In this document: one piece after another, positions 46,626-52,582 of the stretch
Layout of the letters: each line of letters begins with the position of its first letter
How positions within the stretch are numbered: position 1 is the stretch's first letter
From: Scyliorhinus canicula
Lineage: Eukaryota
Assembly (NCBI RefSeq): GCF_902713615.1
Contig: NC_052151.1
Coordinates: forward strand, 201,899,703-201,963,702
Reading direction: 5' to 3'
DNA length: 64,000 nucleotides
Program-made: the position numbers and the translations under genes
Notes under the pieces: generated by a model
Databases searched by the model: none
Told to the model about the DNA's origin: nothing
The model's input: only the letters and a program-made list of their open reading frames with translations

Positions 46626-46707
46626 ATGGGGTTAGTGCAGTTTCTGATGCTGTGTACCATCGTGATGACTCCGTTTGTAACTGCTGAGTCCGAAATCGAC
46701 AAGAGAG
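46626..46707 (+). CDS. Beta-defensin-like gene exon 1, signal peptide and short propiece (MGLVQFLMLCTIVMTPFVTAESEIDKR)
   Basis: atcATGG start about 72 bp after TATAAAT. Hydrophobic leader, acidic propiece ending in KR. Phase-1 donor AG|GTGCCA (non-optimal) fits the exon 2 phase. Confidence 0.72.
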
Positions 46708-47384
46708 GTGCCAGATTTATCTGATCTTTCTGCTCCCATTCGATACATTATTCCTAACTGCATTTTTCTCTCTGATGCTAATATTTGATTTGCCTTTTCA
46801 TTTTTTTTTGCTCCGTGGGACGTGAGTGTTTCAAAACAGTCAAGCACTTCTCCAATTTTCCTTATCGAAGGTGGTGGTAAGTTGCCTTCTTGACCGTCTG
46901 CTGTCTACATGGTGCATGTACACCCACAGTGCTGTTAGGGAGGGAGTTGCAGGGTTATTGACTTATCGCGGAGGTGGAAAGGCATATATTTCCAAGTCAG
47001 GATGGTGAGTGGCTTGGAGGGGAATATGCAGGTGGCGGCGTTCCCATAGGTCTGCTGCTCTTTCCTTTCTAGATGATCAATATACTTCTGAAGGTGCATT
47101 GACAAGTGACTGCAGTGCATATTGCAACAAGCACACACTGCTGCCGACATGTATCTGTGTTGAGCGGAGTTTTTTGGGGTGCTGTTTAACAGGGTCACCT
47201 TTTCCTGGATGGTGTGAAGGTTCTTGAGTGCTGTTGGAGTGGCACTCATCCAGGCAAGTGGAGAATATTCCGGCATAATTCTAACTGCCAGTAACGCCAG
47301 AATCCCAATACCCCATCGTCTGGAGAATTGGGCGAGTTGAAAATCGTGGCCGGTGTCGGGTGCCCGACAGAACGCCATGATCTG

Positions 47385-47735
47385 GGGCAGCAGGGTAGCA
47401 TGGTGGTTAGCACAAATGCTTCACAGCTCCAGGGTCCCAGGTTCGATTCCCGGCTGGGTCACTGTCTGTGTGGAGTCTGCACGTCCTCCCCGTGTGTGCG
47501 TGGGTTTCCTCCGGGTGCTCCGGTTTCCTCCCACAGTCCAAAGATGTGCGGGTTAGGTGGATTGGCCATGCTAAATTGCCCGTAGCGTCCAAAAAGTAAG
47601 GTTAAGGGGGGGGGGGGCTGTTGGGTTACGGGTATCGGGTGGATACGTGGGTTTCAGTAGAGTGATCATGGCTCGGCACAACATCGAGGGCCGAAGGGCC
47701 TGTTCTGTGCTGTACTGTTCTATGTTATATGTTCT
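47385..47735 (+). mobile_element. HE1-like SINE in the defensin intron
   Basis: Full head and tail, TSD ATCTG. Confidence 0.88.
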
Positions 47736-48149
47736 ATCTGGTGCCTCGGCAGTAGCGTCAATGTGTTCCATACTGCGTGTACGGTCAACGCCATTGGTAT
47801 ATCATTAACGTGCCTGATCCGGTACTCCCCAGAGATCCCACGGTGTTCCACCTCCGCCCTGAGGAATTACCAATGGCTTGTTTTACTTGTCGTTTTAAAA
47901 ATCAGGAAACCGTGGCTGCTGAGGGAGAGAGAGGAGGTAGGACAAGAAGAGGCATGCTTAGGGGCTGCTGGTCCTGCCGCTGACAGGGCTGGCTGGAAGG
48001 GGGGGGGGGGGGGGGGTCCAGGGCCCGGGGGAGTAGCAAGGGGGGTGGCCAGGGGATGGGCCGTGTGGTCGGGGTGAACCCCCCCAGGACCAGGATGTCC
48101 GGGCACGGAGTGCCACTGCCAGGCACTGTAAGGCAGCCATCTTGCTGTG

Positions 48150-50180
48150 CACCCCACTGACCGCTCACTGTGACCCATGGTCGTGCAGAGTGACACCGGC
48201 CCCATAAGTCCCCCACCCCACCACCGCCGCACTCGAGAGCACCCTGCAGTGGTGGTGCCTGTCTGAGAGAATCAACAGCCAGCCGGTGAGGATGGGGTGC
48301 CGGCCACCCAACAGGACGATGAGGAGGAGGTGGGAGGGAGGTGGTGCATGAGGCCGTGTGTGTATCGGCAGCGCCTGTCATTCAGGGACCTGCTGGGCCG
48401 GGCATGCAGTCAAAGACTCCAGCTGAGCAAAGAGCAAAGAGCAATACAGCACAGGAACAGGCCCTTCGGCCCTCCAAGCCTGTACTGGTCATGATACCAA
48501 CCTTCACCAAAAGCCTAAAGAACAACTAAAACCCAAAAAAAACAAGGCGGACCGACTTTGTATCTGCCAGATCATGGTGCACATTGAACCGGGGGGAATG
48601 GGGGAGGACACCCACTCCCAGAGGCCATCAAGTTGACGGTCGCCCAGACGTTTTATGCCACGGGGTCCCACAGCGCCAAATGGGGACCTGCCTGGAATCT
48701 CACAGTTGCATTCTCGCCATTACAGAGGCCCGATATGTCCAGTCGGCACAGTGAACCGAGCCCACCAGGTTTGCCACGATGCCCCAAGGCCAGGGGGTAA
48801 TCGACAGGATCCATGGCGCCCTATTAGGAACGGCCCATGGCAGGCGAGTCTTCAGAAACCAAAAGGGGTTTCACTCGGTGAACGTGCGACCATGAACTGC
48901 ACATCATACACGTCTGCACCCGATTCCCAGGCAGAGTGCACAACGCCTTCATCTTGTCACACTCGATGGTCCGTGACATCTTCGAGGCACACCTCCAGGC
49001 ATGGGGTTGGCTATTGGGTGACAGGGTTTATATGCTGCAGTCGCTGATGACGAAAGGCCACGGACTGAGGAGGAGACCAGCTACAATGCCCATGCCACAA
49101 CCAGAGGCGTGATCGAGCGGTGCTTTGGCATCACCAGGGGCGTGATGGAGCGGTGCTTTGGCATCACCAGGGGCGTGATCGAGCGGTGCTTTGGCATCAC
49201 CAGGGGCGTGATGGAGTGGTGCTTTGGCATCACCAGGGGCGTGATCGAGCGGTGCTTTGGCATCACCAGGGCCATGATCGAGCGGTGCTTCGGCATCACC
49301 ATGGGCGTGATGGAGCGGTGCTTTGGCATCACCAGGGGCATGATCGAGCGGTGCTTCGGCATCACCAGGGGCATGATCGAGCGGTGCTTTGGCATCACCA
49401 GGGCCATGATCGAGCGGTGCTTCGGCATCACCATGGGCGTGATGGAGCGGTGCTTTGGCATCACCAGGGGCATGATCGAGCGGTGCTTTGGCATCACCAG
49501 GGGCATGATGGAGCGGTGCTTTGGCATCACCAGGGGCATGATCGAGCGGTGCTTTGGCATCACCAGGGCCGTGATGGAGCGGTGCTTTGGCATCACCAGG
49601 GCCGTGATGGAGCGGTGCTTTGGCATCACCAGGGGCATGATGGAGCGGTGCTTTGGCATCACCAGGGGCATGATCGAGCGGTGCTTTGGCATCACCAGGG
49701 CCGTGATGGAGCGGTGCTTTGGCATCACCAGGGCCGAGATCGAGCGGTGCTTTGGCATCACCAGGGGCATGATCGAGCGGTGCTTTGGCATCACCAGAGC
49801 CGTGATCGAGCGGTGCTTCGGCATCACCATGGGCGTGATGGAGCGGTGCTTTGGCATCACCAGGGGCGTGATGGAGCGGTGCTTTGGCATCACCAGGGGC
49901 ATGATGGAGCGGTGCTTTGGAATGCAGAAGATGCAGTTCAGTTGCCTGGACCACTCCGGACAGGCCCTCCAGCGTCTCACTGGCAGAGTCTCCCACATCA
50001 TGGAAAGTCTGCTGCCTCATCCACAACATCGCACAACAGAGGGGGATGAACGGCAGGCATGATCCAACAAGGAGGATGCGTACGGCCAGAATGGGCAGGG
50101 CATGGGGTCTGGGCAGGCAACACACAGGCTACTCCAATAGCCTCTAGAATTACTAACTAGGGGGCCTGATTGACAGCACG
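48150..50180 (+). mobile_element. Broken PIF/Harbinger DDE transposase (DDE_Tnp_4/HARBI1-like) with internal 33-bp array
   Basis: RP.VYR.RLSF.DL, GWLLGD.., YNAHATTRGVIERCFG...F.CLD motifs, with frameshifts and deletions. Confidence 0.85.
49100..49924 (+). repeat. 33-bp tandem array, 25 units, encoding (TRGVIERCFGI)n
   Basis: 825 bp / 33 = 25 units, frame open throughout. Confidence 0.95.
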
Positions 50181-52200: not shown

Positions 52201-52327
52201 TAGCTATTTTAAAAATTCGATCCGGTGTCGGACGCAGCAACTCTAACAAACGCCGCTTTGGGTTTAGGGGTTGTTCTCTTTCCGCAAGTCCAGGATTATT
52301 CATTCATTCTTCTGTATTCTTTTCCAG

Positions 52328-52464
52328 TTACTCCACATGCATACTGCGGTCAGCAATATAACGGAGAATGTCGCTTTGACGTCTGTCTGCCTGGCGAGAA
52401 AGCTGTCGCCGAATTTGACTGCAGACCTCACCTGTCGGAACGATGTTGCCAGAAGGCAAAGTAA
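52328..52464 (+). CDS. Beta-defensin-like gene exon 2, mature six-cysteine peptide (V)TPHAYCGQQYNGECRFDVCLPGEKAVAEFDCRPHLSERCCQKAK*
   Basis: Acceptor ttctgtattcttttccag. Spacing C-x7-C-x4-C-x11-C-x7-CC with G-x-C before the second Cys, close to the beta-defensin pattern C-x6-C-x4-C-x9-C-x6-CC. Two AATAAA follow. Confidence 0.82.
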
Positions 52465-52556
52465 TTGCTCACCTAAGGGTTTCCCTGCAGCCCCAGACCT
52501 CCAACATGTCTAACTGGCACTGTTTGATTTGTTTAGGATGCGTAACCCGCTGTCTG

Positions 52557-52582
52557 AATAAAGGGCTGTAATCAGAAATAAA
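52557..52582 (+). terminator. Polyadenylation signals of the defensin-like gene
   Basis: AATAAA at 52557-52562 and 52577-52582, about 90-120 bp after the stop. Confidence 0.65.

Follow-up and report, generated by a model that had tools for sequence, protein, structure and literature searches.

Two short exons on the plus strand of a 64,000-nucleotide stretch of the Scyliorhinus canicula genome (assembly GCF_902713615.1, contig NC_052151.1, positions 201,899,703 to 201,963,702 of the forward strand; hereafter the window) join into a 72-codon reading frame for a putative secreted peptide with six cysteines. The leader exon lies at 46626-46707 and the six-cysteine exon at 52328-52464, stop codon included. 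A preliminary description of this DNA had proposed a beta-defensin-like gene in which a leader exon ending in KR is spliced in phase to a six-cysteine exon, and reading the sequence confirmed this two-exon model. The translation of the joined frame is identical to the 72-residue precursor given in that description, as are the cysteine spacing (C7-C4-C11-C7-CC) and the charged residues of the mature peptide (3K+3R against 2D+4E, plus 2 His).

Exons, signals and intron of the candidate gene

The signals expected of a small gene were found on either side of the frame (Table 1). The TATA box at 46548 is the sole TATAAA within 46300-52700, and the perfect octamer that precedes it may be a promoter element; an octamer upstream of a TATA box is an arrangement familiar from immunoglobulin and other lymphoid promoters. 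With A at -3 and G at +4, the Kozak context of the ATG at 46626 is good, and we read no ATG in the sequence between the expected transcription start site and this codon. Downstream, the two AATAAA signals begin at 52557 and 52577, so that both elements of the preliminary description, the upstream TATA box and the paired polyadenylation signals, could be located.

The predicted signal peptide has a hydrophobic core spanning residues 2-19, and V-T-A precedes the likely cleavage point. The call rests on Kyte-Doolittle windows of 12 residues, which score 1.6-2.4 for window starts at residues 1-9 (span 1-20). Exon 1 contributes 27 full codons and one further base (82 coding nt) and ends in ...DKR and the first base of a split Val codon; among the possible donors of the leader frame, only the GT that follows at 46708 matches the phase of exon 2. 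Exon 2, coding over 52328-52461, completes the Val codon and adds 44 more residues, and its stop codon (TAA, 52462-52464) comes four codons past the CC pair. Both exons consist of unique sequence in a window that is otherwise dense in repeats, and no paralogue of either was found inside the 64 kb.

The acceptor of the intron (AG at 52326-52327) is preceded by a tract with 15 pyrimidines out of 17, has C at -3 and no upstream AG; only 27 of the 8,499 AGs in the window are of comparable quality (top 0.32%). The intron itself had been described as filled with transposons. It is indeed repeat-rich, with interspersed repeats at 47200-47740 that have other copies elsewhere in the window, an inverted-repeat pair (48257-48645 and 51858-52130, 73-76% identity) and a 33-bp minisatellite (49100-49920, about 25 copies, 92% matches). 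The description as transposon-filled is only partly borne out: Pfam detected no transposon protein domain in the four intron open reading frames (ORFs) tested. The 33-bp minisatellite is open in several frames and gives rise to long spurious ORFs of at least 300 codons. The inverted repeats flank a GC-rich (0.60) segment of ~3.9 kb, the end of the pair lying ~200 bp 5' of the acceptor, and the segment that they bound may be a large foldback or a DNA-transposon insertion.

Table 1. Features of the candidate gene and of its surroundings in the window
Feature	Position	Strand	Basis or remark
Octamer-like ATGCAAAT	46491..46498	+	Motif position; perfect octamer, 50 nt 5' of TATA box, possible promoter element
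TATA box (TATAAA)	46548..46553	+	78 nt 5' of ATG
Start codon and predicted 20-residue signal peptide	46626..46685	+	Kozak context, hydrophobicity
Acidic pro-piece ESEIDKR with dibasic KR end, and first base of split Val codon	46686..46707	+	Exon 1 end
Phase-1 intron, 5,620 bp	46708..52327	+	Six codons before C1
Exon 2 coding part	52328..52464	+	45-residue six-cysteine peptide; G-x-C before C2, V-C-L-P at C3
Two AATAAA polyadenylation signals	52557..52582	+	93 and 113 nt past stop; GT-rich stretch next
V-set exon of SLAM/2B4-like receptor	30325-30672	-	Pfam V-set 2.7e-10, Receptor_2B4 1.6e-4
Long terminal repeat (LTR) retrotransposon pieces	41610-44100	-	Integrase zinc-binding domain at 41610-42032, 6.8e-17
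Long interspersed nuclear element (LINE) reverse transcriptase ORF	44537-46144	-	RVT_1 4.9e-37; ends about 480 bp upstream of defensin-like ATG
LTR-retrotransposon pieces	56888-60606	-	Reverse-transcriptase fragment 57778-58290, flanked by long open frames

Cysteine pattern, charge and residue similarity

The consensus ranges of beta-defensins are C-X(4-8)-C-X(3-5)-C-X(9-13)-C-X(4-7)-CC. The peptide fits this pattern and is the only non-repeat match to it in the window. Its motif N-G-E-C supplies the G-x-C before C2; the conserved glycine two residues before C2 is thus present, and this column is invariant in an alignment with 12 teleost members. A conserved Gly36 is described for cod Defb (PMC3636224). 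The first three cysteine spacings are EGF-like, but the peptide ends in C-x7-CC, not in the EGF-like arrangement (C4-x-C5 with C6 some 8 residues further on, and no CC pair), and it has no Pfam EGF match.

The net positive charge that is usual, though not universal, among beta-defensins is absent from the mature peptide, which has a calculated isoelectric point of 6.86 and a charge of -0.14 at pH 7 and +1.9 at pH 5.5. From this neutrality the preliminary description had derived a role other than membrane lysis, and it had considered the cysteine spacing to be widened. Neither point survived comparison with other fish. Cod Defb has a charge of about +1 (PMC3636224; +0.8 as computed here), the sea bass defensins have charges of +1.8 and +3.9, and the olive flounder beta-defensins are anionic, with a pro-region of 5-15 residues (PMC8231796). 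A neutral peptide with a 7-residue pro-piece lies within this range, and its charge is by itself no pointer to a special or non-microbicidal role. The C3-C4 loop of 11 residues is the same as in teleost type-1 beta-defensins and crotamine, and the other loops are off by one or two residues. Neither the charge nor the spacing is unusual among fish defensins.

Similarity to known members extends to residues other than cysteines. Teleost type-1 beta-defensins read ...G-V-C-R-K-V-C-L-P-T-E...(11-residue loop)...C...CC, and the shark peptide reads ...G-E-C-R-F-D-V-C-L-P-G-E...(11-residue loop)...C...CC; a lionfish tryptic peptide is also of the teleost type-1 kind (PMC8468504). In a MAFFT alignment with teleost members, at an identity of 24-31%, five of the six cysteines fall in register, and so do the residues G, R, V, L, P and E. 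We compared scores with those of shuffled peptides in which the cysteines were kept fixed and the other residues permuted. Against a hidden Markov model (HMM) of teleost beta-defensin 1 the peptide scores 9.7 bits (shuffles -1.4 +/- 2.4; 7 of 5000 reach the score), and hhalign gives E = 2.7e-4 with a probability of 41%. Smith-Waterman scores are 42 against crotamine (shuffles 23.3 +/- 4.6; 25 of 5000) and 41 against cod Defb (24.4 +/- 4.9; 40 of 5000). These values point to a weak, non-random similarity beyond the cysteines to teleost beta-defensin 1 and crotamine, which is supportive of a family relationship. The best PDB matches of the teleost profile are themselves crotamine and a platypus defensin-like peptide, not mammalian defensins, and the family has therefore diverged far. 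As a lead only, every one of the closest feature clusters in ESM-Atlas is of the Defensin_beta kind (score 0.80).

The gene layout can be set beside that of known systems. Big and beta-defensin genes have a common hallmark, an intron of phase 1 that borders the cysteine-rich region on its 5' side (PMC7203481), and the shark intron has this phase, six codons before C1. Teleost type-1 genes (defbl1, cod Defb) likewise have a phase-1 first intron just 5' of the cysteine domain and encode signal-peptide precursors of 61-70 residues (72 in the shark) with six cysteines, a CC end, G-x-C before and R after C2, V-C-L-P-x-E at C3 and low net charge. In Takifugu defbl1 we verified exons of 55, 121 and 25 nt, with a first intron of phase 1 and a second directly before CC; sea bass has also been reported to have a three-exon layout with an intron before CC (PMC8231796). 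From these the shark gene departs in having two exons, with the whole cysteine domain in one; its C1-C2, C2-C3 and C4-C5 loops are longer by 1, 1 and 2 residues, and it alone has the 7-residue acidic pro-piece with KR. Mammalian beta-defensin genes are closer in layout, with a leader exon, a large intron and a single exon for the six-cysteine domain, and a C2-C3 spacing of 4 is common to their products and the shark peptide; the latter is not cationic and has no detectable sequence match to them (Pfam Defensin_beta, Defensin_beta_2). This two-exon layout of mammalian genes is described in PMC8231796.

Outside these two groups, the snake toxin crotamine (a myotoxin with the beta-defensin fold; PDB 1h5o) shares G-x-C, I/V-C-L-P and the CC pair, and its C3-C4 loop likewise has 11 residues and runs into D-C-R. 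Unlike the shark peptide, it is a strongly cationic venom component, with a C2-C3 loop of 6 (shark 4) and a C4-C5 loop of 5 (shark 7). By description, the anionic beta-defensins of olive flounder also resemble the shark product in their precursors of 67-77 residues, short cleavable pro-region and non-cationic mature peptide, whereas their genes have the three-exon teleost layout (PMC8231796). In invertebrate and amphioxus big defensins a phase-1 intron also precedes the C-terminal six-cysteine domain (PMC7203481), but these proteins carry an N-terminal hydrophobic domain that is absent here: only the signal peptide and the 7-residue pro-piece of exon 1 come before the cysteine domain.

Chance, homology searches and rival readings

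In 64 kb of random sequence the cysteine motif would turn up 0.003-0.01 times, which amounts to hundreds of chance matches in a shark-sized genome (taken here as about 4 Gb, an assumption), and it is therefore weak evidence when taken alone. Leader-like ORFs with a phase-1 GT occur 28 times per 128 kb, and 4 times per 128 kb when a TATA box 40-130 nt upstream is also demanded. When the rates of the cysteine motif, the acceptor, the leader ORF with TATA box, the short tail, the polyadenylation signal and the Kozak context are multiplied, with rates measured on the window, about 1e-3 or fewer chance loci are expected per genome, the similarity evidence not being counted. These signals jointly exceed chance and both exons are unique, and we conclude that the locus holds a gene, or one that fell silent very recently, rather than a chance frame.

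From its sequence features, we consider it probable that the locus is a real, unannotated two-exon beta-defensin-like gene encoding a small secreted disulfide-rich peptide. The divergent cartilaginous-fish defensin of the preliminary description stands as far as its coherent model, its beta-defensin hallmarks and a weak residue similarity are concerned; a meaningful widening of the spacing and a charge-based role do not. With distinctly lower probability, the locus may be dead or may never have been expressed, as a recent defensin-like relic or a fortuitous arrangement that yields no stable spliced mRNA or peptide. The searches of protein collections and JGI metagenomes yielded no evidence of expression or conservation, the gene is set among LINE and LTR fragments, and leader-like frames and cysteine motifs are as common as stated above; the weak donor (GAG/GTGCCA) also fits a dead locus. 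Set against this, the frame is intact, the TATA box, Kozak context, top-0.3% acceptor, short tail and two AATAAA signals are all in place, and the non-cysteine residues beat at least 99% of the cysteine-fixed shuffles in three tests, for which pure chance is no explanation.

Several further results weigh against a beta-defensin-like gene at this locus. Its donor is weak, with neither the usual A at +4 nor the usual G at +5. The protein collections and JGI metagenomes yielded no transcript and no orthologue, and no paralogue was found there or within the window. Pfam returned no match for exon 2 at E <= 10, Defensin_beta (PF00711) and Defensin_beta_2 (PF13841) included. AlphaFold2 gave no usable model to set beside the three-stranded antiparallel beta-sheet of the family, its confidence being low both for the sequence alone (predicted local distance difference test score, pLDDT, 65) and with a shallow alignment of 13 rows (48), and a Foldseek search of PDB with the low-confidence model gave only noise at E > 4. 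The neighbours of Takifugu defbl1, namely a CNK-type scaffold gene (CNKSR-like), an olfactory-type receptor, a PA-RING ligase and SRRT, were not seen in the window. The shuffle p-values also need a discount of roughly 10-20-fold for multiple testing, because teleost beta-defensin 1 was picked post hoc, for its similar C-L-P-x-E motif; even so, they still lend support.

The bearing of the database negatives is limited. The published peptide of cod Defb (PMC3636224) retrieved 20 genuine teleost beta-defensins (P0003-P0022), of which 18 also lack a precomputed Pfam match, so the Defensin_beta HMM search that the preliminary description had put forward came back empty in a way that does not discriminate and says little. 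A PDB sequence search with the peptide gave no match, a word-index search of 5.8 billion clusters with exon 2 and the full precursor gave no candidates, and phmmer with exon 2 against 1.84 billion representatives found no true homologue. The two matches that phmmer did return were rejected as spurious; they are translated tandem repeats whose scores are summed over 5-17 weak stretches. A scan of JGI metagenomes for relatives in host DNA found none. The exact 72-residue product is not on record in public protein collections, in agreement with the preliminary description's view that the gene is easily missed by annotation. In two teleost defensin clusters (40 members, each under a name given by its source), all 30 members listed come from NCBI/UniRef annotation and none from run assemblies. 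Since teleost defensins enter these collections through annotation only, the negatives mean 'not annotated, no close annotated relative', and not 'not transcribed' or 'not a defensin'.

Another reading is that the exons encode a real secreted six-cysteine peptide from a lineage-specific family not yet described, such as a hormone-like or reproductive peptide processed at KR, whose likeness to beta-defensins is convergent. We regard this as improbable. It would account for the lack of a significant database homologue, the neutral charge, the low-confidence fold predictions and the dibasic KR after the pro-piece, a position typical of prohormone processing. It would leave as coincidence the match of G-x-C, V/I-C-L-P, D-C-R and the equal C3-C4 loop length to teleost beta-defensin 1 and crotamine. 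The position of the phase-1 intron also fits beta-defensins (PMC7203481; Takifugu defbl1), and genuine teleost beta-defensins likewise escape both Pfam and comparison with the beta-defensin sequences in PDB.

Genomic surroundings and meaning for the family

The window also holds a SLAM/2B4-like receptor gene, represented by its V-set exon. Receptor genes of the immunoglobulin superfamily typically have phase-1 leader exons too, and the presence of one such gene lends some colour to the idea that the two exons come from separate transcripts, with the leader serving another downstream gene or the six-cysteine exon ending a larger protein. The chance of this appears very small. On the plus strand, 31-46 kb and the sequence beyond 52.6 kb hold only repeats, the transposon coding pieces there being on the minus strand; the leader has a single in-phase donor, and exon 2 has its own stop codon and polyadenylation signals. 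Exon 2 as part of the SLAM/2B4-like gene itself is ruled out: the V-set exon is on the minus strand, and the gene is therefore unable to share exons with the defensin-like gene.

The V-set exon lacks the canonical intradomain cysteine pair, and its gene, some 15 kb from the defensin-like gene, is divergently oriented to it. A strict immunoglobulin V-domain regular expression found nothing in the window, and a listing of open frames with Pfam was used instead. An open frame of 848 codons (22231-24774, minus strand) inside the SLAM-like gene region shares short stretches of 94-100% identity and an identical 20-residue peptide with the region at 44537-46144. Among the downstream LTR-retrotransposon pieces, the open frame 60064-60606 contains no Pfam domain. 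Rfam and tRNA scans of the window gave nothing.

The window is unusually rich in tandem repeats, and satellites also lie downstream of the defensin-like gene. Blocks 1-8000 and 32000-40000 have near-identical composition profiles and common repeats, each with long short-period minisatellite arrays reading CPGIQH/WDPALS, and look like a segmental duplication. The sequence at 2393-2744 matches that at 34045-34396, and both are about 94% identical to 47384-47736. Further minisatellite arrays, with units of about 69 nt reading PHQTLPGQVQHGVRYRVKLP, units of 35 nt and others, occupy 12700-15000, 18000-18700, 25300-26400 and 62750-64000.

For the beta-defensin-like gene we infer only, from the features above, the splicing, secretion, processing, fold and activity of its peptide. 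Transcription would start about 30 nt past the TATA box. Exon 1 would provide the 20-residue signal peptide and the 7-residue acidic pro-piece ending in KR, and after removal of the phase-1 intron exon 2 would supply the whole six-cysteine domain. The peptide would then enter the secretory pathway and lose its signal peptide, and the pro-piece may be cut at KR. Three disulfides would be expected (C1-C5, C2-C4, C3-C6), and the product might act in host defence or immunomodulation, in the manner of the type-1 beta-defensins of teleosts with their weak charge.

Whether this is the first described cartilaginous-fish beta-defensin, with its whole cysteine domain in one exon behind the ancestral phase-1 intron, we can put forward only tentatively, as a possibility to which we give somewhat less than even weight. 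A 2020 review describes beta-defensins as spread 'from teleosts to mammals' (PMC7203481), and the antimicrobial agents that a review on fish immunity from 2019 names for sharks and skates are transferrin, squalamine and kenojeninin only, with no shark defensin (PMC6795676). We found no paper on a chondrichthyan beta-defensin in the open-access full-text literature, which is no proof of novelty.

The practical weight of the finding is modest until expression and conservation are shown, and the case illustrates how short two-exon peptide genes slip past automatic annotation. If the reading as a cartilaginous-fish beta-defensin is true, the origin of beta-defensins predates the split between cartilaginous and bony vertebrates, and the two-exon layout, seen in mammals and in the cysteine exon of big defensins, would be suggested as ancestral, with the three-exon layout of teleosts and sauropsids derived. 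If a shark member were confirmed, the distance between the big defensins of amphioxus and the beta-defensins of bony vertebrates would shrink, the question of the ancestral exon layout would be easier to decide, and the poorly charted innate immunity of sharks would gain a host-defence peptide.

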